Shown in pieces: positions 717 to 43,215 of a stretch of 64,000 nt of DNA. The DNA is taken from the NCBI RefSeq assembly GCF_003918875.1, contig NW_025765736.1, positions 1,364,001 through 1,428,000 of the forward strand, read 5' to 3'. Below the pieces are notes generated by a model, which saw nothing but the letters and a program-made list of their open reading frames with translations, was not told the origin of the DNA and made no database searches. Origin of the DNA: Haliotis rubra. Its lineage: Eukaryota. The number at the start of each line of letters is the position of its first letter. Positions within the stretch are counted from its first letter, which is position 1. Position numbers and translations under genes: made by a program.

Positions 717-749
717 TTTATTGTAATCCTATTGAGGGATTTATCACAG
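717..749 (-). promoter_or_regulatory. Hes copy 1 3' UTR K-box (CTGTGATA) plus AATAAA
   Basis: Plus-strand tatcacag at 742-749 and tttatt at 717-722. Equivalent K-boxes at 7592-7597, 15117-15124, 23369-23376, 32053-32060 and 43176-43183. Confidence 0.7.
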
Positions 750-862
750 TTGTTATGGCAGCACTCAGGGGTCAGACGTTTGGTGGATCGATGAAATGAA
801 TATATATGTATATCAAACTGAATATAGACACATGTACAAAACAAGTCCATTTATGGAAGAGT

Positions 863-2482
863 TCACCAGGGTCTCCATGGTACCTGTTGTTCCGTCTTGA
901 TTTGTTGGGAGTAGGACCACGTGCTCTGAAGCCACGCCCTAACCCTCGAGTCTTTGTTGACCATTTCTGTTGGCACTTTACAGAGTTCTGAATCTGAGAA
1001 GCTGGAGGAGGGATAGTGAGCCGTTCCACGGCTGGACTGTTTGGTTATATCAGGAGAACCAGCATATCCACTGTCTGATAAACTGTTGTCTTCCTTCACA
1101 GGGGAAGTGTCCACTGTCCTACTCATGTACGCATGGGCAGCCGGATGTGGATATTGGGAATTGTAGGAAGGTACTGCACTCAGTCTCTCATAGCAGTTCC
1201 TTGTGTATGACGTCACAGCCTCTGTTGGTGACGTCACGGGTAAGTGCTGAATCTGTGTCATACGTCGAGAGATGTGTTTTCTCAGCTGACGATGTACATT
1301 GTCAGACACACCGGGAAGAGACTGGATGTAGGAGAGGATTTCTTCAGCACATTTGGAGAAGCCATGTTGGAATCTGACTTGAACAGCTTCTTTCACGTGT
1401 TGATGTGTTGTGTTGATCTTCCTGACATTCCTCAGATAATCTACAGTCGTCTCCAGGATCTCAGCCTTCTCCATTTTGTCAAAGTTGGGGTCCTGGCAAC
1501 ATAAGAAAACAATAAGTAACCAAGGCATACTTTAAGTAAAAATATCAGGAATTAAAACGTATTTTAGAATATTATAACCAATAACACACCCGCACTCATA
1601 CGCGCACACTGGAGTAAATATGTATACTATCCCAAGAAAGAAACGCATAGGCATTTTGTATTTTTTTAAATCTATTATTTACCAATTGTGTTCAAACAAT
1701 CGTCAAAATATGTAACGAAAGTGCTGATAACATGATTTTACACAATTGCACAAGTAAAAAATCGACTTTGCCTGAAAATGTTGATTTTGATTTCTTACAA
1801 GAATTAAAAAGGCATCGCCACAACGCAACAGAAATCACCTTCCAGTTGAAATTGTGCAGCAAAGAGCATGCACTGTCTAACTATAAAAATCTAGATTACT
1901 TTCGGAAATCGGCATCCGTTTTGAAGGAGTTTCAAGGTCAAATTGAATGCACAATAATAATAACAACTGAACTAGCATGTAATCATGTTAACTGTTTATT
2001 CTTATACAAGTAAAAAAATATTTTAACTTTTTTATATTTTCAACGGAAGTACTTACGTTTCGTTGTTGATCTCCGCACACGATGTCTTTGATGTCTAACA
2101 GACTCTGGTTTATTCTGGCCCGTCGCCGTTTTTCAGCCATTAGTTTTCGACCCTGGATGATAAAGAGATTGATTAATGATAAATAAAACTTAACATTAGT
2201 TCGCCCCAAATGTACAATGATTATTAGTTTTCAACGCTGAAGATAAATTACATCAGAAAAACAGTTTGCAAGTGAAGACTTGGGAGAGTGGAAACAACAT
2301 CAATTTCACATGAATATGAAATTAGCCACGTGCTTCGGTTGTAAACATGCACTTATAATTTACAATTTGTTAACCGTCGATTTGAAGTTTGCTAAGACAG
2401 GAGTGAATATTTAAGTCAGTCTTACCTTTCTTCGGCCCATGTATTCGCTATCAGATTCCATATTATGATAATAAGATTCCAT
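863..2482 (-). CDS. Hes: Hes/hairy-E(spl) family bHLH-Orange repressor, copy 1 (~260 aa; exons 2426-2482, 2057-2152, 863-1492)
   Basis: Spliced by hand using GT-AG phase-0 introns: MESYYHNMESDSEYMGRRK | GRKLMAEKRRRARINQSLLDIKDIVCGDQQRN | DPNFDKMEKAEILETTVDYLR...FQHGFSKCAEEILSYI (Orange)...WRPW*. The 96-nt middle exon is typical of Hes genes. Confidence 0.95.
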
Positions 2483-2815
2483 GAATGGGATGTGTTCAGT
2501 TCTGAGGGACAAGTTAGTGTGATGGAACGCTGCCTGCCCGACCCGCCTTTATACCCCCGACATTCCCCTACCCACGCTAATCTATGCACAGTTATGTTTT
2601 GACATCTGAATAGCCCGGTGCGATCCGATACACGCAGCCAATCAGCGCACGCCTTGGTAAGTGGTGGCACGCGCCGACTCGCGTTAAACTTCACCCGGAG
2701 ACAGATGTTCTTCTCATGACCCGACAGCGATGATATTCTTCAGGAGCAGAGGCCATCTTGCTTAGCGTGACACGAGGAGTTACGACAAAGAGCACCCGGC
2801 CTGTCAACAATCTGC
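2483..2815 (-). promoter_or_regulatory. Hes copy 1 5' UTR and proximal promoter
   Basis: TATAAA at 2548-2553 (minus), CCAAT at ~2638, TGGCACGCGCC at 2665-2675, Su(H)-like TTCTCATG at 2711-2718, N-box CACGAG at 2771-2776. Near-identical in all six copies. Confidence 0.8.
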
Positions 2816-4170
2816 CTCATTATCATCTTGTATTTCATTCAATGAAAGTTTATTTCCACCTATTTGAAGCGTGACACGAGCTGTGTCGCATTCCGTCGCC
2901 TACCGTTACCTGCACTGAAAATACGTCAAACACTCATGGCCATGTTATATACAAATCATAGTGTTATCTGAATGGCACAACACATACTAATCATTACTCT
3001 AATTGAAAGTAATCATTGCTCAACCTTTTTGTCATTTGGAACAGTATGAATTGTTCAAAAACTGGACGAAATAACAATTTGACATCCTTTTGCGAAATAT
3101 AACTATTGTATAAAAGCTGAGCAACAAGGAAGTTCTTTAATTAATAACTTATTTTGTCATCACGTTTTTAAATTTTCGGAAAGCATCATCGAAGACATTC
3201 TTTGAGCATATTTCGATTTGATAGTTACACAATGTAATGACTTCCTACTTGCTGACATGACACTTGATTATAATATTTATTTGTGATGTGTGTGTGTTAT
3301 GGGGTTTTGGGTTTTGGTTTTGGTTTTCTTTGGGTTTTTTATTGTTGTTGTTTATAGATTATATTTTCACGCTATAAAGTCGACAATAATAAGATTCTAA
3401 ATTAACTCGCGAAGTGTTTCTTTTGTATTCATATTTAACAAAATAGACATGTCCACCTTTTTTGCCTAAAACATGCCTTGATATTTTCACTTACCAATAG
3501 TAACGTTTCATTGTATGAATTATTATAATTGTATAGCAGGTCAAGGTCGGTTTCACGGTTATTCCGAGCTGTTTTACGTGTGATATAAAAGTCGGAAACT
3601 ACAAGAATGTTTGCTGAAGGACTTTCTTGCCAACACAACCATCAAACTGTCTGATGACCTTATCAGCAACATCCAATTATCATATGACAAAAGAGACTCG
3701 TTAGTGTCACAACAAGAACACAATGAGAGTCTTAATAGTCCTCGTTAGTAACACAAGGTTGATGCATAGTAAACGTCCGTCCCTGGCCAACAGGACCGTG
3801 TCAAGACACTTACTATACTCCAGACGGCGCCATGCTCATTATTTTTCCATCTAGCATAAGCTGTTTTTAAACATCACAACTAATAACTTATAAAAACACT
3901 TACACCCAATTAACACACACACACACCTCTTAAAAACACATTTCCTCCTAATGTCCTAGGAAATTAAAGTTTACATTTGAAAATTGGATTTGGGTGAAAA
4001 ATGCAAATATTATCAAAACGTCACTAGATGGAAACAGGCCCCCAAAAACTGTAAGATTATGGTTCATTTGTAAGACAAAATTATAATACTTGTATCTGAT
4101 CGCCCAATAACTATTCCTTGTTTTATGTGGAACTACCGTCACACATATGGGAATAAGGACACACACACAC

Positions 4171-4950
4171 AAATTTTCTTTGGGGTAACCTTTGGGCTTT
4201 TAGAAGAAAAAGAAACCTTAATTTTAAAATTCATAAAAAGTTAGCCAATGTTGATCTTGAGCACTTTATTTCCCCCACTAATAGTTTTAACTCCAGGTTT
4301 ATTGTACAAAGTGTTATGCAGAAATTATTTGATACTTATAGACATGAGTGGAAGGAATCGGTAGGGAATACCTGTGGTCCATCTAAACAGGGGGCAAATA
4401 AGCTACGCTTTTATGGTACTTTTAAGGATGTTTATACCCCAGAACTTTACGTAACTCATCCCATGCCCCGCCCATACAGAAGTGCATATGCTAAGTTCAG
4501 ATCCGGCACTGCACCAATTAATATTGAGCTGGGTAGATACAACAATATTCCACTCAACGACAGAAAATGTTTTTATTGTAAACACTGTGTTGAAGACGAA
4601 GTTCATGTTTTAATTAATTGTCCGGTTTATAGGGATGAACGTTTTAGTCTTTTAAATACTTGTGATAGCCTATGTCAGAATTTTAGTAATCTTACTGATA
4701 TACAAAAAACTGCAATATCTGTTTTATAGCTGCCAAAACCTGCCATGTTGTTTTAAAAAGGAGAAAATCCGTATTATATAACTTTTAATTATTGTTATTC
4801 ATAATACATGTACATGCAATTTTTAAAGAATTTTAGTCTTTCATAATTCCGTATGGAATGGCCCTATGTAAATATATGTTTAATTAGTTTGTATATATGT
4901 ATAACAGGGGTGAGACTTTAATAAATAATCTGTCTGTCTGTCTGTCTGTC
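4171..4950 (+). mobile_element. 5'-truncated non-LTR retrotransposon (RTE-X-like C-terminus)
   Basis: ORF 4316-4729 KLRFY..FK...KFRSG...IELGRY...C-x2-C...EDEVH.LI.CP.Y...R is a LINE ORF2 C-terminal zinc-knuckle region. It ends in AATAAA plus a (CTGT)n tail and is flanked on both sides by (AC)n. Confidence 0.8.
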
Positions 4951-6120
4951 ACACACACACATTACAACAGTACAAAACTGTTCTGATTCATTTTTACTGA
5001 TTCTACGATTGTTAATGTCTCAGATTAATTAATACACTCACGATCTTGTGAACACCCGGTGTCAACACTATGTTAAAAGGATTCATCAACATATGTACAT
5101 GATAAAATCGGAATGGTACAATCGATTCATTTTGTGGAGATTGTGTTTGGTTATTGAACTGACTTTGTTGCTTTCATTTGCATGTACACCGAAATAAAAT
5201 ACATATATTAAAATAAAATAAATATGAGACTTGTTATTATGTCAAAGATACATTCCTGTTCCTATTATTGATGTTAAGCAAATGTTTGTTCAACGAAAAA
5301 CAAGACAAGTGTGATTACCAAACTATATTTCATATTTAGGAAATACCTTTTGAAATAGAACATTGTGTTTTATATTGTTTTGGGTTTTTTATTTAACGTG
5401 ATCAATTCTAATTTATTATTATATATGTATTGACGGTTTGATTTTATTTCACCTGAATATTTGTTTAGTGGAAGTAAAAGTGAAGATGAGTCATATATTC
5501 TGTGTTCGTGTTCAAACAGAAAGAAACCGTAATTGATGAGTGATGATATATACACAAAATTTGTAGGTGTATTTTATCTCGCTCAGGATAATTAAGTATC
5601 CCAAAGACGCTGTTTTTGAAGGAAAATAAAGAATATATATCCAGACTAGGTAACTCTAAATTCTAGACCTTTAATGTTTTTCAATTTCTGAATTAAACGA
5701 ATCCAATCAACAACATTAACATGTAAATACATGCATATGTACATATCAAATCCCATTAAATCGATATGCAGGAAAGGACATATTGGAAAAGCGCCTCGGA
5801 ATCAGTATTGGCTGAGTGATGGTTTAGATTTTCCAAGTGATTTTGCAAATGGGAAAGTGGACAATACGAGATATTTGTAAACATCAGTTTCATAGGCGAC
5901 GCATGAAATTGAGGAAATAGCCACTTCAAAACGCGTTCCTTATGACAGGAAAAAAATATTGTACATCAGTAAACATAACAAACACGTCTATCAGCTGGTT
6001 AGTCCTCCCACGGGCCTTGTTCCGCCAGGGTGACACCTCAATGGAAATTGCAATTATCTACGATTACAGTATTGTATCGGCCCGCATCCCACCGCATGCC
6101 GTCATATTGATTCCGGGTGT

Positions 6121-6210
6121 ATCGCGATGTGACACTTCGCGTCGTCACGCGCTAGTAGCGTCACGTGACATACGGGCACCTGCGGTGATTAGTGTCACAA
6201 CTTCCGGTTA
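6121..6210. promoter_or_regulatory. Conserved distal module A (unit 1)
   Basis: TGTGACAC..GTCACGC..GTCACGTGACATACGGGCACCTGC.GTGATTAGTGTCA; recurs once per Hes unit amid unalignable flanks. Confidence 0.7.
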
Positions 6211-7730
6211 CCCCAGTTCGAGGCGTGCAAGCAGGCGCTCGGTGGACACCCAGCTCAATGAAACCACTATGTCAATATTTACAATATTTGTGGTTCCATT
6301 TGTGTGTGAATTATGAAGGAATCATATTGCTTTCATGGACATTTTCGGGTGGATATTATAGCGCCTTTTTTCTGCCAAGTTTCCCATTACCCACAAGCGA
6401 TTGTGTTTCGGGGGGAAAGAGAGACGAGTTCATATCTTATCATTATTACCTGTATATGGGTATTTATAGAGCGCTATAGTCCATCCCGTTTACATGCATG
6501 CTCAAAGCGCATATATCTATTCATAAATAATGGGTTGTATGCATCCATATGTATTATCTTCCAAGAATTTATATTTTATATGTTTACACGTTTTTATTTT
6601 ATCCTGTATTATCTGAAACTGCGGGAGACATTTAGATCGTATTGTAGCGCCATTAACATTTTATTTTTGTGTGTTTTGTACGAGAACACGTCCCGAGAAC
6701 GTCCGTGCCCCGAACTTCATGAAACTATTTGAAATATGTTATGTAACACAATAGAATGAAATGGCGAAGCACCTGAGCGATAATGGTTCAAGAACAGTCA
6801 TTGTGCTCATGAAGATAATCAAACCTGGGATTGAGTATGAAACACTCTACCTATGCATCCCTGTAGACTAGAGAAAGAAACTATTGGAATCTGTACCCAT
6901 TCGTTATATTTGATTTCGCAGCGACAGGTTCGTGAAATCTAAAAGACCCGGTGCTTTTTATCAACGTTGTTTGAGAAACTGTAACTTGGAATCGAAAGAA
7001 CCATCATACGTAACAGACGATTGCAGAAATAAATTGCGCTAAACTGCCTGGCAAAATGTATCCACTTCCAGTCTTAGAAAACTTATGCTCAGTATTCGTT
7101 TACCAGGATAGCAGTGTAACGAATAATACTGAGCCTAGGTTTACTTAGACTGTATCCACTTTAACACTGAATTTGACAAAACCGAAAATAAATGTTGTTA
7201 GACAAAACAAAATCCGTATGAAATACATCTCCATCTGATAACTATTTCTTGTTTGTGTTACTTTCGCCAAACGTGTGTGTGGTCTTTCTTTTGCTCGACA
7301 ATATTTTGACAAAATGTTTACACATTTGATCCAGCTGAGGTGCTGCAAATATTATACTGTTTTCCGTAGTATGTGTATTTAGTGTGGTATACACCACTTT
7401 CGCAACATGTCCAATCAATCTGTTTAAAATTGCATTATGCAACCGAAATACGGCATTAGCGAAACCAAAGTAAGACGACGACAAACTATCGACGACAGTT
7501 TTATTCCGGTTATCCACTGAATGGACCAAGTCTGCAATAAACTAAACATGAGACGTTTGTAAATAATTCATTTATTTATATATTTATATTCATCACATTG
7601 TGTATTATACCACAGACAATATATATGAATGTTTATATATAGAATAAGCACTGTACGATGCGTGTTTTGAATACTTATACACGTATATAACTGTACACGA
7701 CAAACAAGTCTATGTTATACATGGAGCCGC

Positions 7731-8924
7731 TCACCAGGGCCTCCATGGAACCTGTTGTTCCGTCTTGATTTGTTGGGAGTAAGACCACGTGCTCTGGAGC
7801 CACGCCCTAACTCTCGAGTCATCAAAGTTTTTATGGATTCTGCTTGACTCGATTTTACAAAGTTCTGAATCTGAGAGATTGGAAGGGTGATAGTGTCCAG
7901 TTCTGTGGGTGGACTGTTTGGTTATATCAGGAGAACCAGCATATCCACTGTCTGAGAAACTGTTGTCTTCCTTCACAGGGGAAGTGTCCACTCTCCCGCT
8001 CATGTACGCATGTGCAGCCGGATGTGGATACTGGGAATTGTGGGAAGGTTCTGCACTCAGTCTCTCATAGCAGTTCCTTGTGTATGACGTCGTATCTTCT
8101 GTTGATGACGTCACGGGCACCTGCTGAATGTGTGTCATACGTCGAGAGATGTGTTTTCTCAGCTGACGATGTACATTGTCCGACACTCCCGGCACAGACT
8201 GGATGTAGGAGAGGATTTCTTCAGCACATTTGGAGAAGCCATGTTGGAATCTGGCTTGAACTGCTTCTTTCACGTGTTGATGTGTTGTGTTGATCTTCCT
8301 GACATTCCTCAGATAATCTACAGTCGTCTCCAGAATCTCAGCCTTCTCCATCTTGTCATAGTTGGGATCCTGGAAAATTATAAAATAACATGAAATTAAG
8401 AGATTGAATTGCTAGGTGTAAATTGAATGCACAATGTGACTAAACTAGCAGGTTTATCATGTTAACTGTTTATTCTTATACAAGTAAAAAAATATTTTAA
8501 CTTTTTTTATATTTTCAACGGAAGTACTTACGTTTCGTTGTTGAGCTTCACATACGATGTCTTTGATTTCTGTCAGACTCTGGTTGATTCTGGCTCGTCG
8601 CCGTTTTTCAGCCATTAGTTTTCGACCCTGAAGAAAAACACATCAGAATGTAACGAAAAATTGAAGGTACACACAATGAAAGTTACAGATGTGAAGGTTA
8701 CTGTTATGAAGTTGACAAAGCAGTGACTTTATGCTTCAAAAACGACTCTATTCCCATTTTACCATGAATATTCAAACTAGCCACGTGTCTCAGATGTAAA
8801 CAGGTTCAGGTAATGTACAGGTTGTTAACAGTCTGTATGAAACCTATCACAGAAGACTGCTGCTTACCTTTCTTCGGCCCATATATTCACTCTCTGATTC
8901 CAGGTTGCTGAGATATGATTCCAT
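7731..8924 (-). CDS. Hes: Hes family bHLH-Orange repressor, copy 2 (~263 aa; exons 8868-8924, 8532-8627, 7731-8369)
   Basis: MESYLSNLESESEYMGRRK | GRKLMAEKRRRARINQSLTEIKDIVCEAQQRN | DPNYDKMEKAEILE...WRPW*. Splice sites are canonical and exon lengths are multiples of 3. Confidence 0.95.
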
Positions 8925-12577: not shown

Positions 12578-12634
12578 CATTCAGCTCTCCAACTGGCTCA
12601 TACAGTGTTCAACATAAAGTGTGATTATTCTCAA

Positions 12635-12960
12635 TCAATTTCCCCGTCTCATTGAGTGAAAAAACTCCATTAGTGTCAACACCTCACAACACTGTCTGTT
12701 GTAAACACCAGGATATATCACAGATCATTATGACGTCACACAGAGATCTCTGACGTAACGTCATTGTTCACTGTCACCCATCCAGTGATGGAAACTGTTT
12801 GTAATGGTCAGTCTGGTGAAGAACCCCTCTGGGCTGGACAAAACAGCTGATTGAGAATAATTGGCTGACAAGGTATCAAAAATTACACATGCTGTGTTTT
12901 GTTCCAAGTTAAGCCTGTTTGGACACATTTACAATGTGTGGATACTTTCACACGTGGACG
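12635..12960. promoter_or_regulatory. Conserved distal module B (CRE/Sox), unit 2
   Basis: TGACGTCA at 12731-12738, TGACGTAA, CATTGTT, CAGCTG; paralogs in units 3, 5 and 6. Confidence 0.65.
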
Positions 12961-13875: not shown

Positions 13876-14861
13876 GACGTGGAAGCACTGGCGGAGGTCG
13901 TTCACGTGGATTTTATATACTTTTTGTGTGTTTATTGTTTGTGTCTGTTCAGAAGGAGTTTGGACAGTGGTGTGCTTTAATGGCGATACTGGACATCAAG
14001 TCGACACCCAGGTATATAGAGAGTTTAAAACATGGAGTTTTCGCCTGCAACTGAAACCCAGCGGGTCTGTCCAACCTGTCTTACCTACTGATTCAGTAGA
14101 AACAGTTAAATTTAGATTTCTTTTGAAATTGAACATGTATTTTACATGGCGACCTTCGGTGGTCAATCGACTGCCTATCACACAAAACTGAATTATGGTA
14201 CAGACCAGTAAACCCGTGAAGATCAGGGTTAGAATTGGTCTTCAGCACATGTCATCGTATCCCAATTGCGTAGCGATTCTCATGCTGTTGACCACTGGAG
14301 TGTCTAGACCAGACTCGATTATTTACATATTGCTGGAATACTGCCGAGTGCGGCGTTAAACAACAACCAAACAGACCAGTAATCCCAGTTCACAATGGAT
14401 TACAGTCAACTTTTCAACAGTTACTGTGTAAGGTTTAACGGCGATGTGTCGGAGAATTCACTGTCGACCGTATGAGTGATTATTGGTGATGACACTTTAA
14501 CCATGACAGAAGCGTTAAAGTCAGTTATTTCAGATTAGGTCGAATGCTTCAAGTGTTGTTAGGGATGTCAGTCGATATGATTTGACTTTAGTTCGATGTC
14601 GTAGCTATCAAAAGGAAGATTTAAAGGAAGCTTATACTAAGTCTAAGTATAAATATACCTTTCCGATCAAGTGGAAGTTTTACCCCTTCAATAACGACGG
14701 AGGGAAAAGAAGAATAAAAAGCTAATGATATATTATGTAATAACTTGCGGTCATCAAATATCGACACTTCAATCCCCAAAACGTGGCAGATCTCAATTCC
14801 TGGAAACCTATTCTGATCAAGGTGTACACAAGTACATATATACCAGTACACCTTGATTAGA

Positions 14862-15023
14862 GTGAGTGAGTTTAGTTTTACGCCGCTTTTAGCAATATTC
14901 CAGCAATATCACGGCGGGGGACACCAGAAACGGGCTTCACACATTGTTCCCATATAGGGAATCGAACCTGGGTCTTCAGCCTGACGAGCGGACGCTTTAA
15001 CCATTAGGCTACCCAACCGCCCC
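14862..15023 (-). mobile_element. tRNA-derived SINE family 1
   Basis: Minus strand: box A TAGCCTAATGG, box B GGTTCGATTCC, tail GCGGCGTAAAACTAAACTCACTCAC. Confidence 0.85.
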
Positions 15024-15216
15024 CCTTCATTAGAACAGGTACATTGTTTGTGTAAACAATTACAACAATGGAACGTAGATGTTTATAAATTATATTTCTT
15101 TAATCAACAAACAATATATCACAGCCCATATATGAGAAGTGTCCTGAATATAAAGCACTATCATGACGTAATCACATGATACAAAATCACAACCATTGTT
15201 CCTAATAAAGTTCAGT

Positions 15217-15246
15217 CAGAGACCGTATACCGATATATGGTCTCTA
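15217..15246. mobile_element. TIR-only remnant (probable excision footprint) of the P-like element
   Basis: CAGAGACCGTATACCGATATATGGTCTCTA flanked by GTTCAGT/GTTCACT; absent from the paralogous copy-4 3' UTR. Confidence 0.7.
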
Positions 15247-15261
15247 GTTCACTGTAGTATT

Positions 15262-16524
15262 TTACCAGGGTCTCCATGGAACCTGTTGTTCTGTCTGAAT
15301 CTGCTGTGAGTAGGACCACGTGCTCTGGAGCCACGATCTAACTCTCGAGTCTTTGTCAACCATTTCTGTTGGCACTTTACAGAGCACTGAATCTGAAAAG
15401 CTGGATGAGGGATAGTGTCCAGTTCTGTGGGTGGACTGTTTGGTAATATCAGGAGAACCAGCATATCCACTGTCTGAGAAGCTGTTGTCCTCCTTCACAG
15501 GAGAAGTGGCCATATATGCATATGCAGTCGGATGTGAATGCTGGGTATTGTGGGAAGGTTCTGCACTCAGTCTCTCATAGCAATTTCTTGTGTTTGACGT
15601 CACAGCCTCTGTTGTCAAGGGCACCTGTTGAATATGTGTCATACATCGAGAGATGTGTTTTCTCAGCTGACGATGTACATTGTCCGACACTCCCGGCAGA
15701 GACTGGATGTAGGAGAAGATTTCTTCAGCACATTTGGGAGAAGCCATGTTGGAATCTGGCTTGAACTGCTTCTTTCACGTGTTGATGTGTTGTGTTGATC
15801 TTCCTGACATTCCTCAGATAATCTACAGTCGTCTCCAGAATCTCAGCCTTCTCCATCTTGTCATAGTTGGGGTCCTGGGAAAATAAGAGATCAATAAGTA
15901 ACCAAGGCATACAACATGAAATAGAAGAAATTTTTAAAAACTCGTAGAAAACGTGAGCTCCTGTTGTGAACATTGAATTATGATTAGATTAGTTTTAAAA
16001 ATCAAGAAATTAAAACATTGCATTGCTACGTGTACATTTAAAACATATACTAACAACTAACCATGTAAACTGTGTAATTTTATACAAAATAAAATGAGGT
16101 TTTTTTCATATTTTAAGCTGATGTACTTACGTTTCGTTGTCGAGCGCCACATACGATGCCTTTGATTTCTGTCAGACTTTGGTTGATTCTGGCTCGCCGC
16201 CGTTTTTCAGCCATTACTTTTCGACCCTGCAGAAAAACATATCAGAATGTAACAACAAATCGAAGGAATCACAATGAAAATTTCAGGTTACTGTTATGAA
16301 GTTGACAAAGCAGAGATTTTATGTTCTAAAACCGACTGGGACACAATCTATTCCCATGTTACCATGAATATTCAAATTAGCCACGTGTCTCAGATGTAAA
16401 CAGGTTCAGGTAGCGTACAGGTTGTTAACAATCTATTTAAAACTTATCATAGAAGACTGATGCTTACCTTTCTTCGGCCCATATATTCACTCTCTGATTC
16501 CAGGTTGTAAAAGTGAGATTCCAT
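15262..16524 (-). pseudogene. Hes: Hes copy 3, frameshifted (exons 16468-16524, 16131-16226, 15262-15874); pseudogene, truncated bHLH-only allele, or sequencing error
   Basis: Extra G at 15736-15738 (catttGGGagaag versus catttGGagaag in the other five copies) gives ...FQHGFSQMC* with the stop at 15725-15727. The downstream frame stays open to WRPW, and promoter and splice sites are intact. Confidence 0.85.
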
Positions 16525-18979: not shown

Positions 18980-19255
18980 CGTGTCAACACTCTGTGTGTC
19001 ATAAACACGAGGGTATATCACAGATCATTATGACGTCACACAGAGATCTGTGACGTAACGTCATTGTTCACTGTCACCCATCCAGTGATGGAGACTGTTT
19101 GTAATGGTCAGTCTGGTAAAGAACCCCTCTGGGCTGGACAAAACAGCTGATTGAGAATAATTGGCTGACAAGGTATCAAAAATTACACATGCTGTGTTTA
19201 TTCCAAGTTAAGCCTGTTTGGACACATTTACAAGATGGGGACCCTCCCACACGTA
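18980..19255. promoter_or_regulatory. Conserved distal module B, unit 3
   Basis: Near-identical to 12675-12950; TTCCCACG at 18949-18956 adjacent. Confidence 0.65.
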
Positions 19256-22425: not shown

Positions 22426-23470
22426 TGGAGACGCTGTGTGGAGGTCGTTCATGACTACCCTGTGTGGATTATATATACTTTCATGTGTGTTTTCATTGTT
22501 TTTGTACATTCAGATGGAGTTTGGACTGAATTGTGTCTTATTGGAAATACTTAATTGGATTACACCCCACGACCCAGACATGAAAAGCGATGCAATCTTT
22601 TATAAAATGTTTCAAACATGGAGAAGTGTGGCAGCAGACATCTGCAAAGCAGCCGGACTGGATTTCATAAACCAATTTGATTTAATTCTTTAATGTTTAA
22701 TTTCTGGTGAACGAATTAATACAATATTGGGTGCTTTGTCAACGTTCCGTGTCCGCTTCGAAATGGCACATATACACGACCATGTCATATTACATGTAGT
22801 TTATTCGCCAACGATACGTTGCCAGTCAACAAAACGATATTTTATTTTTATCGATGGATGGCCATGTTTTGTGGAAGCAAATGGTCAATTGCGTACCTCA
22901 ATGGATACCGTCATGCCCGACCGTTCATTACACCAAATATATCACTGTTTGATATTGGCTGATATGTTCATGAACGGCGTGAATCTCTGGGTTTATTGCA
23001 TTGCATCTGTTAAAATGGAGCGTTTCATTACCACAACGATCAATATGCCGACTCATTGAGCATCTTTGATGACGTCACATTGAAGAAGAAATTATAGGAT
23101 ATTTATATACCGCACATATCCACGCAACTAGTACATGCTCAAGACGCTGATTTTTTTCCCCTCGATCACTGGATGTCTATCTCAACGGCACATCGTATTA
23201 TCAATCTCAACTCCCTGGGGACCATACAAATGAAATACGTCTCAAGTATAGACATTAGTATTTTCATCAGGTGTGTTGTATATGTTGTACAGATACCCCA
23301 GTGACCCTTAAAAATATTTCAACGAACAAAATAACTAAATAATGTTTATTTTATCAACAAATGTATGTTATCACAGTCAGTATCATATATGAAATGTCCA
23401 ATAAACAAAGCACTATTATTACGTATACAAAATCACAACCATTGGTCCTAATAAAGTTCACTGTAGTATT

Positions 23471-31886: not shown

Positions 31887-32084
31887 CCCATACAATTTGT
31901 ATTCCAACCAACTACGTCTGTCAATTTCGATGCTGTTTTCTTGCATTCTGTGACATCAACCTAGTTGCCTGGTAACCTTTAGTAATATGTAGAACTAACA
32001 CATGGTTTCATTATGCATGATTTATTACATATATGCAAGTTTCGCACAACAATATCACAGCCGGGGGAAAGCGTCAAATAAATA

Positions 32085-33995: not shown

Positions 33996-35659
33996 GCGCC
34001 TTTAATGAGTGTTTGTATATGGCACGTACGATAGCTGAAGCTTTAAAGAAACAATTTTACATACCCATAAATTCTTCTTTAAGAAAAGAATTCATAACCT
34101 CATTACTTGACTAATATCTAGAATTCATAAATTTTGTTTTATATTCTTGAGCACAAACATTTCTGGTGTCCCCAGCCGTGACATTGCTGGAATATTGCTA
34201 AAAGCGGCGTAAAACTGAACTCACTCACTTGAACACAAAACGCTGATGGCATCATATAGCATGAATCGAATAATGTTTTGAAACAAACAAAAAAAGGATT
34301 GCTTTTAGAAGTCATCGGGTGTGATTAATCCCTATTAATCTTCTTAATCTGTCGCGAGACAGATTATCTTGTAATGTTCCAGACTGTAAACAAGCTTACT
34401 ACCTTCAGTCTGCTAAACCAATTATGATTCAGTTCCTATGCTCATCTAACATACACACGTACATTCATGCAAGTATTTTAACACAGTTTTCTTTTAATGT
34501 AAAGAATAGAAACCGGTTTATCGTCTCCATCTAGAACAGATCTGTAAAGACTGGATACTTACAGTTTACTTGAGTGGATTACAATATTTATGGTCTAGCA
34601 TATGTTATGAAGATAGGCGTTTATTCACAATCTGTCTTCTGTGAGAACGGTTTCGCTGCGTTTTATCTTGACATTTAAACACTAAACCCCTAAATGATTC
34701 AAGTTGAGATTTTCCCCAGGTTTCGGATATATTTTACCCGGTAGTTGTTGCGTATGGCTCCATCAACCTCTATGTACATACATGTATTGGTTTGCAACGG
34801 AACTTATGAGAACAATGCTGCGATTCAATAGTCTTCCATAATTCAGTTTTAAAAGCTTCTGTACATTTATACATATATGTATAACATATGTTTGTCTGTT
34901 ATACAGAATTGGTAATATAACTAGAGTCTGCCACATATCCACGCAAACCAAGAAACTCATGTTCAGTTCGGTCACTAAAAGTGAGTGTCATTCTTCAATA
35001 GATCGCAATTTTCTAATGCTAACATAATCATAACATATTGAAAGATATCAAGTGCATGCCAATAATGGTTTAGTCGTAGTTCTTATTAGACCATGTCAAC
35101 GATGAAGTACAAATTAAAACGTTATTATTTCAAACAAAAACAGCCTGTTTACACACTGCTGCATGTAAACACTAGACTATCAACTAGTCTCTGAAATGAA
35201 CATATTTTACTGAAAAAAAGTTCATCGTAAAAAATATATATATATAATGAAAAGGAGCCCTGAGACTTTCTTAATTTTCAGAAGCTAAGGAAATCTAGAC
35301 TTTCCACATTTTCTAGACTTGCGTAGCCTTTCTTGGATATATTTGCTTCAGGGTCTGTACGACAGACTAGTACAACACTGACATTGAATGCAAATTTTGG
35401 ACTGTATCTGACGCTTGGATTAGGCATGTAACATGCTCTGTTGAAGACAAATAAGCATCAAAGATATTGATTTATAATATTTTAAAATGATTGTGAATAT
35501 TAGAAAATGTAGGTGAAGTAAACAGAGAATTCACGTTCGTAAAAATTCAGAAGTGTAATGTCTTATTTATCTTTCAGTATTGTCATCCACGGCAGTTCAA
35601 ATAATAAACACGACCCTATTCCTCTACACCAATAAAGCAACAACGTGATCTCACCCCGA

Positions 35660-35810
35660 CATTATTATGATAACAGTTTGGTGCCAAATAATCACCTGCA
35701 CTGTCTGATAATTACAATCAGTTGTCCCATAAGTAGTTGCTGAAAGGCCAAGTCGTTAGTGTCAGTTGCGGGTCAAAACCGTTAATTATTCCGATAGGGG
35801 GCGCCACCCC
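35660..35810 (+). promoter_or_regulatory. Conserved module C, unit 5
   Basis: Plus-strand CCGATAGGGGGCGCCA at 35791-35806. Confidence 0.6.
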
Positions 35811-35964
35811 CCGAGCAAGCAGCATGCACAGACACGTGTGGACGTGATCTACGTATGTACAGATGTGCATTTGACACGGATGTTTTAGTTCAATTTTAGA
35901 TCAATTTTAGTTGAATCCGTATTGTTTTGTATTGTGAAATGACATTAAATTTCTGTAATAAATG

Positions 35965-36125
35965 TTATACTGTATTTGGGATTACACTTTCACAGTAAAG
36001 TACAGATTCTAGTACTTTTGTTGAGTTGCGTCCCATCCGGGATTCGAACCCACGCCGTCAGAGTCAGGTACCTCGCCAGCACACAAAGTCAGCCGCCTAA
36101 TCCGCTCAGCCACCTCGACTTTCAC
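35965..36125 (-). mobile_element. tRNA(Ser/Leu)-derived SINE-like element
   Basis: Minus strand GTCGAGGTGGCTGAGCGG...GTGGGTTCGAATCCC. Its 3' part recurs at ~10245-10300 and twice at 49440-49570. Confidence 0.6.
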
Positions 36126-37749
36126 TAATATATTTCGCAATAATTTAGCACGTGGGACTAAAAACATAAACTGAAGTGGTACACCTGGTATTGTGGGATT
36201 ATTTAAATGTAAAAACAAACAAATATCATGTGCTTTTTGTGCAACACATTCACAATGTTTGTGACTTGTAATTAAAAAACACGTTTCAAATTATTTACGT
36301 TTTGTTTTTGGGAGCAAAATTACAGGCGTGCACTTTCTTTCCTTCGTCAGTATATGTTCGTTTTCGTTATTCTTTTCTTCTCCTTGTGAAAACATAGAAA
36401 ATGCAACCCATGTTCCCTATCAAGCCATGGGAAACATGATATATACCGGAATCTATTTCCAACCAGTGTTACACTTCCGAAGGAGTGCCACGATAACATG
36501 TTATCAGTTTGAACTTTGACTTCAGATCATGTACACGATCCAGTGGTTAAGTTTTCGCAGATATACTGGTTCCTTTCGACCAAACGCAGATAGTTGATAA
36601 TGCATACGTACTGTGTATATATAAAATATGACTCCCCTATGAAACGCATGTTGTTATCGGGTCGCGTGCCCTACACTATCGGGTCGACCTTGGGGTCAAG
36701 TGAAGATAGTGAAAGGGGACTAAGTCAGAAGCACTAGATGACATCGTCTTCAACTAGATTTGGAGTATATGTGATTCAGTCCAGACGATACCGTTGTGCA
36801 AAACATTTTGTGATAAATGGAACTGGAAGAGCTTTACTTTACCTCACATGACTACATTTTACCCAGATCATACCCAACAAAAGTTATTGGTATGTTGATG
36901 GAACGTTTTTTCTCTGAACGTCCATTGTGATATAAAACACAATGTTGATCTGGAAATATGTCTTCTCTATGAGCGAAAACATTATAGAATGAATGAATGA
37001 AAAACTTTATACAATGAATGAGTGACACCAGAAATGGGCTTCACACATTTTACCCATGTAGGGAAATACAGTGAAGGAAGGAAGGAATTAGCGAAAACCT
37101 TATAGAATGAATGAATGAATGAATGAATGAATTTATACCATGAATGAGTGAATGAGTGAGTTTGATTTTACGCCGCTTTTAGAAATATTCCAGCAATATC
37201 ACGGCGGGGGACACCAGAAATGGGCTTCACACATTTTACCCATGTGGGGAAATACAGTGAATGAATTTAATTTGTCTGTTTTTGTATCCAGTTCTTGTGT
37301 ATTTTGTTTAAATGATATATGTACTGGTGAGGTATTGATATAAGCAGAGTTCTGCTTGTTTACCGAACCAGATTCTTTAGGGATAAAAATATGTTTAAAC
37401 CACAATGAATGAAGGAATGAATGGAGGAAGGAACGAATGAGCGAAAACCTTATAGAATGAATGAATGAATGAATGACACAAAATATACAAACAATACTAT
37501 GATAGGCAAATGACTGACGAATTTAAAGTTCTGTATACTGATCGGGAATCTACCAACATGTTGGACTGCTATAGTTCACAATGAGTAATGAGTGATAATT
37601 CAATGTCGCATTTGTATATACCACACGATGGAAACCAACTATCGGACGAACCTGACTGGACTTGTTAAATCCCCCGTGCCCTAATCTACTTTTAATGTCG
37701 TTATCAAATAAGGGGATCTTATCTCATTTTAACCAAATTTGTCAACTAT

Positions 37750-37972
37750 CAGTTAGATTGTCCGGACCAGCGAGACTCAACGCCGGAGAGGCCATTTACA
37801 GACAATCTTCATCACTGGATGGGTGGGCGTGAACAATGGTATTACGTCATTGTCTCAGTGTGACGTCACAGCAGTGTGTGATATATCCTTGTAGTGTTAT
37901 AATGACGGTAAGTGTCGTGGGGTGTTGACACTAATGGACTTACTCCGCTCTGTCGGACGGGGAAATCAACTA
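37750..37972. promoter_or_regulatory. Conserved distal module B, unit 5 (inverted)
   Basis: Reverse complement aligns to 48373-48600; TGACGTCA at 37861-37868. Confidence 0.6.
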
Positions 37973-39353
37973 AAGAGGTCTTCAACACTTCATTAGACAG
38001 TTATGGAGACGGGGACATTTGTTGATAGGGACAATTGGGGATGACTTGTAAATAAACGAGGTATCAGGGCCAACAAGTGTTCAATGCTTGTTTTATTTAT
38101 CTAGCGTCACAGAAGCGTAATATACAGTTGTCTATTGACCCTGTTGTAATTTGACACTGAAATATTTGTTGGGCTGGCATTGTCGTGGTTCCAATACGAC
38201 ACCTCATTAGACTGACATAAAGCTTTCACGTAAACTCAGCAACAGCGTTTGTAACACACAAATAAGAAACCGAATTTTTAAAGGCATATAAAAAATCCTA
38301 AGTGTTAATGTCCTTTATTCAAATTGTTTAAAAACGCAGTTTTCAATTCATATTGTCGTTTCAAGGACATATGAATCATATTTATGTTAATGTATTATAC
38401 AATAATATTACATTGCACGTGCATATATTTTATTAAAAAAAATTATTTAAATTTAAATACAGTATACATAGACTTTGACAGATGGAACATATTCTGAAGT
38501 CTTTGCAAGTATTTAATTATGTAGAGTTAGATATAGGTAAATCAGTCCCAAAACTACAATTGACGTGATGTAAACTGTAGGCAAAACGTAAGCATAGAAT
38601 ATTCAACAGTGATTTTTAATAGAAAATAGTTCCTTCTCAAAACTGGAAGAAACTCATTCATACTAATGGTTTCCAGTTTTTTAGTCGATGAAAATGCTTG
38701 TCTATGAAACTTAATATTTGACTGACATGGACATCAGAAAGATGACATTCAAACGAAATATCTGTTTTAAACACTTACGCAAGCAACACAAAATATTTAA
38801 ATACTCACAGATAAAGAATATATTTTTACTAAATTTACCCACATAACACCTGTGTGTTGAGTCAGAAATCAAAAAGACATGCACATGTTAATTGTAAAGT
38901 ATTTGCCATACATTTATGTTGTTGATTTGTCGACTGAAAGGGGAATGTTTTATGTGGGTTTCTACATCTCTACTGATGACATGATTGCGTTTATCAGTCG
39001 ATTCTGTCTTGAAGAGATACGTTTTGGACATTCTATCAAGCAATGATAATAGTTTTCAGTTGGTGAACCAAAATGAACTTGATAGCGATCTGGCATCCAT
39101 TGCCATGATAAACATTACTTCGGGAGACACTGCAGGTGGTGGTTTATTACCGAGGTGTCCATTATGAGCGGTGGGGACTGGTATCAGGTGGGGGGTGTCA
39201 TTCAAAACACACCTTGTTTTGGGGTTTGTTGTCACAAATGACTAATCGTGTTCAAAGGGTACGGAAATTAAAAAAAGAGGAATTTACCTGCAACAGTATA
39301 TTCTGCTCATTTCTACTGTATGCCTTGACTTTAGGTTTATCAAACTTTGGGTT

Positions 39354-39478
39354 ATATACTCATGCCAATAATGGTTGTCACCCCATTTTTGTTAATTGGA
39401 GAGGGGTGTGGGGTGTGAGGTGTGTGTGTGGGGGGTGGGGGTGGGGAGGGGTGAGAACCATTATTGGCATGAGTATAT
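39354..39478. mobile_element. Tc1/mariner-type MITE
   Basis: ~30-bp TIR TACTCATGCCAATAATGGTTGTCACCCC with TA flanks; second copy at 47132-47232. Confidence 0.75.
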
Positions 39479-40794
39479 TGTTGAAAATAGGCATGCATCT
39501 TACGGCCATTGTATTTGACTATGATTATCTCGGACACAGTCAAATACATTTTTGTGTTTAAAAACAAGTTCAAATGTTGACATCTTGGCTCAACGCCATT
39601 TGAAAATAGCGGCTCCGAATACAAATTAACCCTTTACATATGTACAGTGAGTAAGGGACTTAAAATTTAAAATTTCATTGGCATTTCAGACATATCGTGA
39701 ATATGAAAGCTATATATTGATAAATATCATTCTTAACGATAATAATACTTGTCAACAAAGGACAGTAAAATAACTAGAATATCACATATTTATATTAAAA
39801 ACAAACAAGTAACATTTCAGGTTAATGGTGAAGGAGTACGTATATACTCAGAGATGTTGTGATCCTAACAGTAAAGAAGAAGGGGGGTGGACAAAATCCC
39901 AACTGGACAAAATGCCATAGCACCAAATTTCTTTGCACTTTAGACAAAATCCCACACCAAACTAACAAACAAAGGACAAAATCCTATTTATTTTAATCAT
40001 GTTTTTTTTATGACAGAGGCCAGTGAGCTAAGTATATAGTAGAATGTTTTGATGTTTTCACGAATGAGTTAAAAGAGAGTTATCAATAAAACTCTCTTCC
40101 TTATATGTGTATCACTTCCAAATGCCATTCAGTTCTATAACATGGCATAAAATGCACACACCTTTGACAAAATATCAGAGATGGCTGGGTCATAAGTAAA
40201 AAACGAGCGACAATTTACGAAACCGTATTTTGCATATACAGAAAGTGAGGCAGTTCCCACCTAAGACTAACATTTCATCACAGAAATGATGTATATATAT
40301 TAACCTAGAATATAATTAGAAGCGACAAAACCCTTTCCACATTCATAAGAAATCTCTGCTAAAAGCAGAGTCGATTGTGACTGTCATGAGCATATACTTG
40401 TTTCAGCCTTACAGACGCATGATGTTGTTTGTAAACAAATTGCGTCTGGACCAGACAATCCAGTGGTTGTCACCATGCGATACGATGAAAGAGCATGTGT
40501 TTATGAATCACTATGAAATAGTGATGATACCAGGTGTTCGCGAAAAGATGGTTATAATCGGAACAGGGCTAAGGTAATCAAGATTCGTCTCTGATTGGGT
40601 CTGAAAATACATGTGGCATTTTGGTGAATTTTACAATACTGTGATGCTGACGTATTCCATATATTGGGTGGTAAACCACAAAGAACGTTCAGTTCCCCTC
40701 CAAAAGTGTTTACTCACTGGAATAAAGCCGGCGACGAATACATCAGTGTCACCTTCAAATAAAACATTTTGCCGATGTGTTGCATTTCAAAACA

Positions 40795-41123
40795 CAATAC
40801 CCCAGCCAACATTCCTCCACTCTCACAGTCATCAGCCCGCTATAAAACCCCGTTGATGATGTTGTGACACGCCGGAACAATGACAGTGACGGATGGCGGG
40901 CACGAGGTGTCAAGTCGACAAGCGCCATCGACGCCCATCGTTATTGGATACATCCACTCAACCATGGGCAACACAACCACCATTAGCTCGGAGCGCTCCT
41001 CTCGGTAAAATGTCTCCCGTTATCTCGCGTGTGTACTATCGTCACGTGTGCCGTGATAAGAGGGCAAGTGCACTGATTTAGTGTCACGTGATCCTATTAG
41101 GGGAAGTCCCGTGGGGAATCCCC
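40795..41123. promoter_or_regulatory. Module E plus diverged module A (unit 5)
   Basis: ~170 bp almost identical to 48848-49015, followed by GGGCAAGTGCACTGATTTAGTGTCA and two kB-like sites. Confidence 0.6.
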
Positions 41124-42687
41124 GACACTGACAGTTGCAGATAATGTTTATCACACAAGTGTCAGTCGACTGGGGGAACTTTAAATGTCCTATTAATTGT
41201 TAGATGATGCGAAATTCGAGCTTCATTTAATAAACATTATGGCTCACCTTTTGTAACCTGCAGCTAGGGACATATTTAATAAAATAAATCATCCACATTA
41301 TGTAATTCGATCCACAATCGATCACACTATATATATATATTATATATAAAAATCCATTTAAATTGAAAAGGAGTCCCAGTCAGATGGGAAATTCAAAACC
41401 TGAGGGAATCTAGACTTGCTTCTTTTGGGGTTTTAGGGAGGGCTAGGCAGTAGGGAAAATATTGTGGTTCAGGGACGGAGACAGACCACTCATTCTCCAC
41501 CCATCCTCAGCCAGATGGTTGAAAAAATTGTATGCTGTTGAGTTCCCTACACTTGAAAACTGGATTTGACCAAAGCTTACATACCGTTACGTAACGTTAC
41601 TAGGCTGTAGCGTTAATCGTTTTGGTCCAAACCCCATCTATGATATCCGTGTGAAATATGCTGACGTACAAAAGAAAGTACACATCATTTTAGGGGGATT
41701 ATTTTCGAAAACACCGATCTTGATACACGTCACAAACAATGTGAACATCACATTATGTACACTAAATGTTCTGACTGGGAGAATAATAACACAGTACAGG
41801 TGTGTACTTCTATGTACGTCAGTGTACACCACCATCTAATAACTATTCCATGTTTGTTTTACCTTCAACCACCATCAATCGTAGAAGCACATTTTCTTTT
41901 GGACTGCTATATAATGTTTGTATTTAACTTTAAGCATAACTTAAATCCATGTTTGTCAACGATCTGGAGTTGAGTTATCGCCATGTTCATACATCTGATA
42001 AAAACAAATCCATTCCAAGCTCCTTGCAGCTCGTTCTAGGGTTCCTTTGTAGCATAATGCTATTAACCCATGCAAAGAGACGAAAGAAACTTTACCTCTG
42101 TGTTTCATTTCATCATGATAACTGAAAATATCAAAGTTTCGACATAATATCTCAGATATGAGGATATTACCCTATTGAACCATTTACCTCATTTTGCCAC
42201 AAAAATCCCAACCACAGACTGTTGCATGATTGAGTGAGTGAATTTAGTTTTACGCCGCTTTTCGCAATATTCAAGCAAGATCACGGCGAGAGATACCAGA
42301 AATGGGATTCACACACTGTACCCATGTGGGGAATCGAACCCGGGTCTTCGGCGTGACGGGCGAGTACTGTAACAAGTAGGCTACCCCACTGCCCCGTTGA
42401 ATGAATGAGTGGTATGTATTTACAGTTTTCAGTTACATACAAAACACAAACTGGTATACGTTTCCCCTCAGATTTAACCAACATGTTTTGTGGTAAATAC
42501 ACCCTAGCTTAGATATGGGAATAAATATACATCAACGTACTATGAATGGAATTATTCATTTTGATCTATTTGTATTCAACGCGATTTCATGCAGTGAAAG
42601 AAAATGGCATTTGATCACTGATACAACATCCCCATACAGTTTGTGGTTGTCTGTGACATGTTCCGTTGGTGATGATATCAAACTTAA

Positions 42688-42853
42688 CTGACTGAATGAG
42701 TTTGGTTTTACACCGCTTTTAGCAATATTCCAGCAACATCACGGCGGTGGACACCAGAAATGGGCTTCACACATTGTACCCATGTGGGAATTCGAACCCG
42801 GGTCTTCGGCGTGACGAGCCAACGCTTTAACCATTAGGCTACCCTACCGCCCC
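42688..42853 (-). mobile_element. tRNA-derived SINE family 1
   Basis: Full length; 14-bp TSD GATATCAAACTTAA. Neighbouring copies at ~42230-42395 and 42990-43124. Confidence 0.9.
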
Positions 42854-43215
42854 GATATCAAACTTAAGTCTATAGTCTCCATATGTACGAGCGGTTCGAA
42901 CCGGCATTCTCGGCTGGAACGCACAAACTACTGGATTAGCTGTTTCCTCTGTGACTCTGTGAGAAACCTAGAGAAAAGATATGTAAGGTTTCAGCAATTT
43001 TCCTGCAATATCACGGCGGGGGACACCAGAAATGGGATTCACACATTTTACCCATGTGGGGCATTGAACCCGGGGCTTCTGTGTGACGAAGAAACGCTTT
43101 ATCTACTGGGCTACCCCACCGCCCTCAAAATATATATAGAACAATAAATCAGTGTAGCGTTAGATTTTATTCAGGTATCACAGATTATGGCACTTTATAG
43201 AGACAGCAACACTCA

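Follow-up and report, generated by a model that had tools for sequence, protein, structure and literature searches.

K-box octamers beside the polyA signals of a tandem abalone Hes cluster as candidate miR-2-family target sites

The window analyzed here, a stretch of 64,000 nucleotides from Haliotis rubra (NCBI RefSeq assembly GCF_003918875.1, contig NW_025765736.1, positions 1,364,001 to 1,428,000 of the forward strand), contains six abalone genes of the Hes type (bHLH-Orange-WRPW) arranged in tandem on the minus strand, together with two GLTP genes. All six Hes copies have WRPW as their C-terminus and share a three-exon gene model, for which copy 1 is the worked example. A Pfam search matched HLH and Hairy_orange in copy 6, with the HLH match on a single exon scoring 19.9, slightly under the cut-off of 20.7. 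The nearest relatives of the cluster proteins are Haliotis proteins named "enhancer of split / HES-1-like" (74–95% identity), and the sequences indicate that the cluster is an abalone-specific tandem expansion, independent of the fly one. A search of sequencing runs turned up none recorded as RNA for this species. RNA contigs from four probable RNA runs of related abalone, compared over positions 300–3200, gave a splice junction in copy 1 from 1492 to ~2058–2076. We take these spliced contigs to mean that Hes genes are transcribed in related abalone; within 300–3200 they covered coding exons only, with none over the copy 1 UTR.

Similarity among the copies is high up to the end of the coding sequence. 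The coding ends adjoining the UTRs are 69%–97% identical among copies, and the coding parts of copies 2 and 6 and of copies 3 and 4 are 97% identical, a clear sign of gene conversion. These conversion tracts stop at the stop codon. We note that the 3' UTRs listed below are predicted, as their placement rests on polyA signals and on T/GT-rich sequence 3' of the hexamers.

866..1492, minus strand: final coding exon of copy 1, from the Orange domain to WRPW (located by tblastn with Haliotis Hes proteins)
717..862, minus strand: copy 1 predicted 3' UTR (stop codon 865-863, AATAAA 722-717)
742..749, minus strand: copy 1 K-box, perfect 8-mer CTGTGATA, 114 nt past the stop codon and 19 nt before AATAAA
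7571..7730, minus strand: copy 2 predicted 3' UTR, ending in AATAAA 7576-7571
7608..7615, minus strand: copy 2 decayed K-box CTGTGGTA, one A-to-G change from the octamer
7592..7597, minus strand: copy 2 TGTGAT 6-mer, 15 nt before the hexamer, absent from the H. asinina orthologue
15099..15261, minus strand: copy 3 predicted 3' UTR, ending in ATTAAA 15104-15099
15117..15124, minus strand: copy 3 K-box, perfect 8-mer, 12 nt before ATTAAA, identical in the H. asinina orthologue
15186..15191, minus strand: copy 3 second TGTGAT core, retained by copy 4 and the two H. asinina orthologues
15176-15171, minus strand: copy 3 further TGTGAT core
23345..23470, minus strand: copy 4 predicted 3' UTR, ending in AATAAA 23350-23345
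23369..23376, minus strand: copy 4 K-box, perfect 8-mer, 18 nt before AATAAA
23432..23437, minus strand: copy 4 second TGTGAT core, homologue of the copy 3 second core
32021..32084, minus strand: copy 5 predicted 3' UTR (64 nt; AATAAA 32026-32021)
32053..32060, minus strand: copy 5 K-box, perfect 8-mer, 25 nt past the stop codon and 26 nt before AATAAA
43166..43215, minus strand: copy 6 predicted 3' UTR (50 nt; AATAAA 43171-43166)
43176..43183, minus strand: copy 6 K-box, perfect 8-mer, 33 nt past the stop codon and 4 nt before AATAAA

The K-box octamer CTGTGATA was found intact on the mRNA strand of five of the six copies (1, 3, 4, 5, and 6). The original prediction had located these octamers and the copy 2 core correctly at every coordinate, and had placed them 4–26 nt 5' of an AATAAA or ATTAAA signal, which agrees with the gaps we obtained (19, 15, 12, 18, 26, and 4 nt in copies 1 to 6). 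The extra TGTGAT cores that it had reported in copies 3 and 4 are also present (15191-15186, 15176-15171, and 23437-23432), and the second core reads CTGTGAT in H. asinina copy 4. Neither the Brd-box (AGCTTTA) nor the GY-box (GTCTTCC) occurred within 320 nt 3' of any of the six stop codons.

The further claim that all six UTRs retain a K-box held for five copies and failed for copy 2. The A-to-G change in its CTGTGGTA would place a G:U wobble at microRNA position 3, and the same position has decayed further in the H. asinina orthologue. The separate TGTGAT core of copy 2 is unconserved, and since a UTR as long as this one should contain about 0.05 such 6-mers (an estimate from base composition), it is weak evidence alone. 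"All six" was therefore an overstatement, and five of the six genes have a maintained site. As copy 2 and its orthologue lack the site, any such control is not obligatory for the Hes family.

The octamer is far more frequent in these UTRs than chance predicts. Across 673 nt of total predicted 3' UTR, five CTGTGATA copies were observed against 0.015 expected. In an unbiased k-mer census, it was the sole 8-mer in at least four of the six UTRs, and TGTGAT was the sole 6-mer in all six. None of 5000 dinucleotide-preserving shuffles produced an 8-mer common to five of six UTRs; when copy 4, which resembles copy 3, was dropped, an 8-mer in four of five UTRs was reached by two of 5000. The whole window holds 12 copies of CTGTGATA compared with 2.5 expected, a number reached by no shuffle. 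The remaining seven copies all lie outside Hes UTRs:

8845: CTGTGATA in intron 1 of copy 2
12716 and 19016: CTGTGATA in two copies of one intergenic repeat
13721 and 47717: CTGTGATA in other non-coding sequence
29408, plus strand: CTGTGATA in other non-coding sequence
55917: CTGTGATA in GLTP coding sequence

Comparison among paralogues and with H. asinina showed that the K-box is more strongly conserved than the UTR sequence around it. Once the octamer is masked, the UTRs cannot be aligned between copies, copies 3 and 4 excepted, which bears out the earlier description of them as mostly dissimilar. Short islands of similarity next to the K-box were seen only in the pairs 1/6 and 3/5. H. asinina has seven tandem orthologues, six of which carry the 8-mer 4–26 nt before AATAAA; the copy 1 K-box is unchanged there, and the seventh paralogue, with an unrelated UTR, nonetheless carries the 8-mer. 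Between the Haliotis rubra window and H. asinina, K-box columns were identical at 40 of 40 positions, against 357 of 521 (69%) in the rest of the UTRs (P ~3e-7). The bases directly before and after the octamer vary freely across nine independent sites, so the conserved block coincides exactly with the 8 nt of an 8mer site. Judged from these alignments, K-box and polyA signal are kept together as a single conserved module, and the remaining UTR is too diverged to align.

The same arrangement occurs in distant snails. The hairy genes of Aplysia, Biomphalaria, and Bradybaena have UTRs of 640–1570 nt, and each contains one perfect 8-mer, 20–42 nt before the first AATAAA. These three heterobranch genes and the Haliotis cluster form one well supported gastropod clade (100/99), and Aplysia and Biomphalaria have in common a conserved island surrounding the K-box. 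In Gigantopelta, a Hes gene adjoins GLTP, as in the abalone window, and has TGTGATA at +92. The original prediction had called for a comparison with background frequency, and besides the excess within the window, CTGTGATA was present in eight of 12 gastropod Hes UTRs, compared with three of 12 at most for the other 1679 of 1680 8-mers of the same base composition. These patterns suggest that the K-box is likely of gastropod-wide antiquity.

No K-box was found in the sampled Hes genes of the bivalves Dreissena and Mya or the nemertean Lineus, and Patella was ambiguous. A Hes-alignment scan of metagenome contigs yielded 14 loci, one with a WRPW stop, and the site was absent in its 145 nt downstream, too little to be informative. 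A contig from a more distant relative broke off at the stop codon and offered no UTR. We regard it as possible, although doubtful, that the pairing of Hes genes with the K-box is conserved between phyla, with the bivalve and nemertean absences reflecting secondary losses or the sampling of a single paralogue from each.

The octamer CTGTGATA is the exact complement of miR-2 nucleotides 1–8 (UAUCACAG) and thus forms a canonical 8mer site. The mollusc miR-2 seed is ATCACAG, identical to that of the fly microRNA family (PMC12691275), and a miR-71/miR-2 cluster has been described from the gastropod Biomphalaria (PMC11353429). miR-2a was recorded in at least five of eight mollusc species, in a study set that included H. 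rufescens and left the positive species unnamed (PMC11067994). A search with Rfam gave no match in the window, so no microRNA gene lies there. We put at roughly 75% the probability that the CTGTGATA octamers are selectively maintained miR-2-family target sites at the 3' end of short Hes 3' UTRs. That the K-box is a miR-2-family seed match under selection, as originally proposed, is well supported by H. asinina, its seventh paralogue, and the heterobranch hairy genes. Since five of six abalone Hes genes and three distant snails share the octamer and polyA layout, a microRNA brake of the fly type probably also works on gastropod Hes genes. The octamer would lie inside the mature Hes mRNA, and miR-2 would be expressed in this abalone. 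Argonaute loaded with miR-2 would then bind the octamer and bring in the machinery for deadenylation and decay, leaving the Hes mRNA less abundant and shorter-lived, as with the K-box in Drosophila Enhancer-of-split genes.

An unlikely alternative is that the octamer is a site for an RNA-binding protein or an upstream auxiliary cleavage/polyadenylation element instead of a miR-2 target, its place 4–42 nt before the hexamer then reflecting 3'-end formation or tail control. The tie to the polyA signal is tight even in the long heterobranch UTRs, and by our estimate chance would produce this placement with a probability of ~0.008 in the Haliotis lineages and of ~1e-3 or less in the heterobranchs. 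Folding likewise predicted no raised accessibility of the octamer, with a mean unpaired probability of 0.14–0.45, under each UTR's own mean, which counts against the miR-2 reading. However, the conserved positions are exactly the eight that would pair with miR-2 nucleotides 1–8, and nearness to the end of the UTR is a known feature of effective microRNA sites. The octamer was also absent near the 3' ends (polyA signals or UTRs) of the window's two GLTP genes, a small sample (n = 2 genes) that speaks against a general 3'-end element, and a general polyadenylation element was rejected on this basis. A Pumilio/FBF or CFIm (UGUA) reading was rejected separately for consensus misfit, as the octamer lacks the known UGUA upstream element and departs from the Pumilio/FBF consensus.

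It is very improbable that the octamer is functionless, a leftover of the paralogues' common origin or a product of gene conversion. The genes are tandem duplicates with conversion in their coding parts (97% in copies 2/6 and 3/4), and the flank similarity by the K-box in copies 1/6 and 3/5 shows common descent of the site. The 8-mer is perfect, though, in UTRs whose other sequence can no longer be aligned; it is unchanged between two Haliotis species that differ elsewhere in the UTRs, and it recurs in heterobranch orthologues. Spread by conversion is further contradicted by tracts that end at the stop codon. We give equally little credence to a DNA-level element (such as a binding site for a transcription factor, or a portion of a downstream enhancer or terminator) falling in the 3' UTR by chance, since the octamer does occur in the repeated intergenic element (12716, 19016), but all Hes-associated copies are on the sense strand between stop codon and polyA signal, the antisense octamer was found in none of the 12 gastropod Hes UTRs, and this orientation and position suit an RNA element.

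Reading the octamers as miR-2-family sites invites comparison with known systems. In Drosophila, Enhancer-of-split bHLH genes and genes of the Bearded family have the K-box (cUGUGAUa) in their 3' UTRs, where miR-2/6/11/13/308 bind it (Lai, Burks and Posakony 1998; Lai 2002; Lai, Tam and Rubin 2005, cited via PMC4575448). The abalone sites resemble the fly K-box in octamer, strand, and 3' UTR location, and the gene class is also alike, consisting of Hes-type bHLH-Orange-WRPW repressors in a tandem cluster. The abalone cluster differs in belonging to another phylum and in having arisen by an independent, lineage-specific gene expansion. Its K-box stands without an accompanying Brd-box or GY-box, there are no Bearded-type genes, and abalone and snails, unlike the fly, usually have one site, within ~40 nt of the polyA signal.

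Vertebrate Hes1/her genes are controlled by miR-9, which acts on a site in their 3' UTRs (review: PMC3834235). This is similar to the abalone candidate in that a microRNA acts on a short-lived Hes transcript via the 3' UTR, but both the microRNA and the site are different. To our knowledge, miR-2 is absent from vertebrates. By analogy, the miR-9 case supports the view that Hes genes can come under microRNA control repeatedly. Within molluscs, reporter-supported miR-2 targets are EcR, RXR, and Runt in Pinctada (PMC12691275) and IkB2 in Crassostrea (PMC4941716). These share seed-based 3' UTR targeting with the abalone candidate, but include no Hes or hairy gene.

The fly Enhancer-of-split K-box is the textbook case behind the discovery of seed-based targeting, and we know of very few microRNA-target relationships shared between animal phyla. 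As far as we found, the K-box has previously been described only in arthropods; our literature search, which mostly did not cover subscription journals, returned no report of a Hes gene with a K-box from molluscs, annelids, or other spiralians. Purifying selection on the octamer in the Hes genes of abalone and distant snails offers a concrete, testable case beyond arthropods, and it is relevant to whether Notch-pathway effectors came under microRNA control ancestrally or on several occasions. If the relationship were true across phyla, the Hes K-box would join the few microRNA-target pairs conserved between them. The close coupling of site and polyA signal is a further regularity, with a possible effect on deadenylation, and miR-2 becomes a candidate regulator of mollusc Hes dosage in larval neurogenesis and shell-field patterning. 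The coding part of copy 3 carries a 1-nt frameshift, an extra C near 15735 that may reflect a pseudogene or an assembly error, and it counts against the miR-2 reading that the K-box of this copy is kept despite the broken reading frame in this assembly.

Five of the six tandem Hes-type (bHLH-Orange-WRPW) genes on the minus strand of the abalone window, copies 1, 3, 4, 5, and 6, carry the K-box octamer CTGTGATA on the mRNA strand of their predicted 3' UTRs, which are 50–163 nt long across the six copies. The motif lies 4–26 nt upstream of a polyadenylation hexamer (AATAAA, but ATTAAA in copy 3), and T/GT-rich sequence follows the hexamer in every copy. On re-checking the window, all positions given for motifs and hexamers in the original prediction were correct. 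Its claim that all six UTRs retain the K-box held for the five copies named but not for copy 2, where the octamer is missing and two related sequences were found:

7597–7592, minus strand: TGTGAT, the core only
7615–7608, minus strand: CTGTGGTA, one mismatch to the octamer

The H. asinina orthologue of copy 2 has neither octamer nor TGTGAT core in its UTR, so the 6-mer is not conserved; CTGTGGTA is, as judged from its sequence, a relic of the K-box. A second TGTGAT core near the UTR start of copies 3 and 4 is kept in all four genes when both H. asinina orthologues are counted, with CTGTGAT in H. asinina copy 4.

Haliotis asinina (GCA_037392515.2) has seven tandem Hes genes, ordered as in the window, and a perfect octamer lies 4–26 nt upstream of AATAAA in six of them. 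The seventh gene, positioned beyond the window start, has the octamer in a UTR unrelated to all others. In the five alignable H. rubra/H. asinina pairs, K-box columns were identical at 40 of 40 positions, compared with 357 of 521 (0.69) at the remaining UTR positions, an excess with P of about 3e-7 (about 1e-4 if background identity is 0.8).

Related genes were collected by protein search from the Gigantopelta Hes gene, yielding Hes/hairy proteins of gastropod, bivalve, nemertean, and other origin. In a maximum-likelihood tree, with biased sampling and a root placed for drawing only, the Haliotis cluster, Gigantopelta, the Patella cluster, and heterobranch "hairy" genes formed one clade (support 100/99). 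Three heterobranch hairy genes each have just one octamer ahead of the first AATAAA:

Aplysia: octamer at +798 after the stop codon, first AATAAA at +826
Biomphalaria pfeifferi: octamer at +587, first AATAAA at +637
Bradybaena: octamer at +1515, first AATAAA at +1564

A conserved island of ~35 nt, common to Aplysia and Biomphalaria, surrounds the octamer. Just downstream of the heterobranch K-box is an imperfect CTGTG-type repeat, CCTGTGACATA in the Biomphalaria hairy locus (L009, 7650–7665) and CTGTGTAA in that of Bradybaena (L010, 13662–13672); this second repeat may be a decayed tandem site. The Gigantopelta Hes gene has the 7-mer match TGTGATA at +92. Patella has a single octamer at +299, downstream of AATAAA at +63 and +93, and its site is ambiguous. 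In a control comparison of all 1680 8-mers sharing its base composition, CTGTGATA was the most widespread, present in 8 of the 12 gastropod Hes UTRs examined; the runner-up occurred in 3 and the antisense octamer in none of the 12. No 7- or 8-mer match was found upstream of the first AATAAA in the Hes genes of Dreissena, Mya, and Lineus. The original prediction had proposed that K-box control of Hes genes was ancestral to protostomes or convergent. What stands is narrower: the site is likely of common ancestry within gastropods, as far as these UTR comparisons indicate, and an origin ancestral to all protostomes is possible but rather unlikely; the sampled bivalve and nemertean genes do not support it.

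The octamer is exactly complementary to UAUCACAG, nucleotides 1–8 of the miR-2 family. Across nine independent sites (five in the window, one in the seventh H. asinina gene, and three in heterobranchs), the single bases before and after it vary freely, so the conserved block is exactly as long as a canonical 8mer site. The mollusc miR-2 seed is ATCACAG (PMC12691275), a miR-71/miR-2a/2d/2b cluster has been described in the gastropod Biomphalaria (PMC11353429), and the family has been dated to before the protostome ancestor (PMC3384581). Given the comparative and seed evidence, we consider the Hes octamers most likely to be maintained, putative miR-2 target sites. By analogy with the Drosophila K-box, binding of miR-2 at the octamer would lead to repression, and the sites would limit Hes mRNA level and lifetime. 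Predicted accessibility at the octamer was lower than the UTR average, and an Rfam search of the window returned no match.

The nearest known system is miR-2 family control of Enhancer-of-split through the K-box in Drosophila, where the same motif mediates transcript repression according to work cited in PMC4575448. The two systems share motif, strand, location, and gene class, but Haliotis belongs to another phylum with an independent gene expansion, its copies lack the Brd-box and GY-box, and its site keeps a fixed place close to the polyA signal. In vertebrates, miR-9 controls Hes1, indicating that microRNA control of Hes can arise with a different microRNA. In the literature covered, outside which many subscription journals lie, no report of a K-box in any spiralian Hes gene was found.

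Octamer and hexamer are never more than ~40 nt apart. We estimate that uniform placement would give such closeness with a probability of ~0.008 in the Haliotis UTR lineages that are independent, and of at most about 1e-3 in the heterobranchs, whose UTRs are long. MicroRNA sites near UTR ends have greater efficacy, which the position of the K-box may reflect; alternatively, two elements under selection, a short spacer apart, may have survived as one module, and nothing more. This tight spacing is also the main argument for reading the octamer as an element that is bound by a protein and takes part in 3'-end formation. However, the octamer lacks UGUA and does not match the Pumilio/FBF consensus, both glycolipid-transfer-protein (GLTP) genes in the window are without it, and its boundaries coincide with the extent of microRNA pairing.

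Paralogy was also considered. Once octamer and hexamer are masked, copies 3 and 4 are the one pair that still aligns (z = 34), and the remaining pairs score close to the shuffled range. The exceptions are short islands right by the K-box, in copies 1/6 and 3/5. Over the final 150 coding nucleotides, the copies are 69–97% identical. Since UTRs have diverged while coding ends are similar and islands persist at the K-box, the site derives from a common ancestor and has been kept while its surroundings were replaced; paralogy does not explain its retention. The coding 3' ends of copies 2 and 6 (7731–8030 and 43216–43515) are 97% identical, as are their last 150 nt, next to unrelated UTRs, and likewise for copies 3 and 4; gene-conversion tracts seem to end at the stop codon.

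Base composition predicts 0.015 octamers in 673 nt of UTR, where five were observed. In the window there are 12, where 2.5 are expected, and 12 was reached in 0 of 100 shuffles. In a k-mer census blind to the K-box, CTGTGATA was the sole 8-mer in at least four UTRs and TGTGAT the sole 6-mer in all six. None of 5000 dinucleotide-preserving shuffles gave an 8-mer common to five of six UTRs; with copy 4 left out for its evident likeness to copy 3, four of five UTRs shared one in 2 of 5000. Seven octamers in the window are outside, and unrelated to, the Hes UTRs:

intron 1 of copy 2: one
an intergenic repeat (family D9), two copies: two
other non-coding places: three, one of them on the plus strand
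GLTP coding sequence: one

The D9 element (12684–12899 and 18984–19199, upstream of copies 2 and 3) is a 95% identical intergenic duplication with two ACGTCA-type (CRE-like) motifs and one CTGTGATA.

The six WRPW-ending minus-strand ORFs share 74–95% identity with Haliotis proteins that NCBI lists as "enhancer of split / HES-1-like"; H. rubra gives the top match, identical for none. Pfam matched Hairy_orange in copy 6 frames, with HLH slightly below the cut-off. When a full-length H. rubra protein served as tblastn query, one three-exon model fitted all six copies:

exon 1: 19 residues
exon 2: basic/helix-1
last exon: helix 2 through WRPW

Contigs of probable RNA runs from related abalone join 1492 to ~2058–2076 across copy 1 intron 2, indicating that cluster genes are spliced and expressed in relatives; none of them reaches a 3' end. 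In copy 3, a C run near 15735 is one C too long (15730–15740, minus strand; GGCTTCTCCCAAATG versus GGCTTCTCCAAATG in copies 1 and 4), which disrupts the reading frame where the Orange domain begins, with the K-box still present. The frame is intact in the H. asinina orthologue; the additional base marks copy 3 as a young pseudogene or else may be an assembly error. The cluster is followed by two tandem GLTP genes, at 55.7 and 61.4 kb:

55683–56174, minus strand: GLTP exon
61433–61924, minus strand: GLTP exon

In the deep-sea snail Gigantopelta, too, the sole Hes gene adjoins a GLTP gene, so this neighbourhood is conserved.

Other sequences occur in and around the UTRs. CATATAT is present in copies 1–5 (e.g., 15134–15128 and 32036–32030). 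Copies 2, 3, and 4, like the seventh gene of H. asinina, contain AGTGCTT. Both 7-mers may be additional common motifs or mere AT-rich composition. The copy 3 UTR holds a palindromic insertion of ~35 nt (~15210–15253), absent from copy 4 and the H. asinina copy 3 orthologue. Repeat family D3 has nine copies of ~167 nt, two of which (14857–15023 and 42959–43125) come immediately after the copy 3 and copy 6 polyA sites; a copy follows the copy 6 gene in H. asinina as well, and the repeat looks tRNA-derived and SINE-like.
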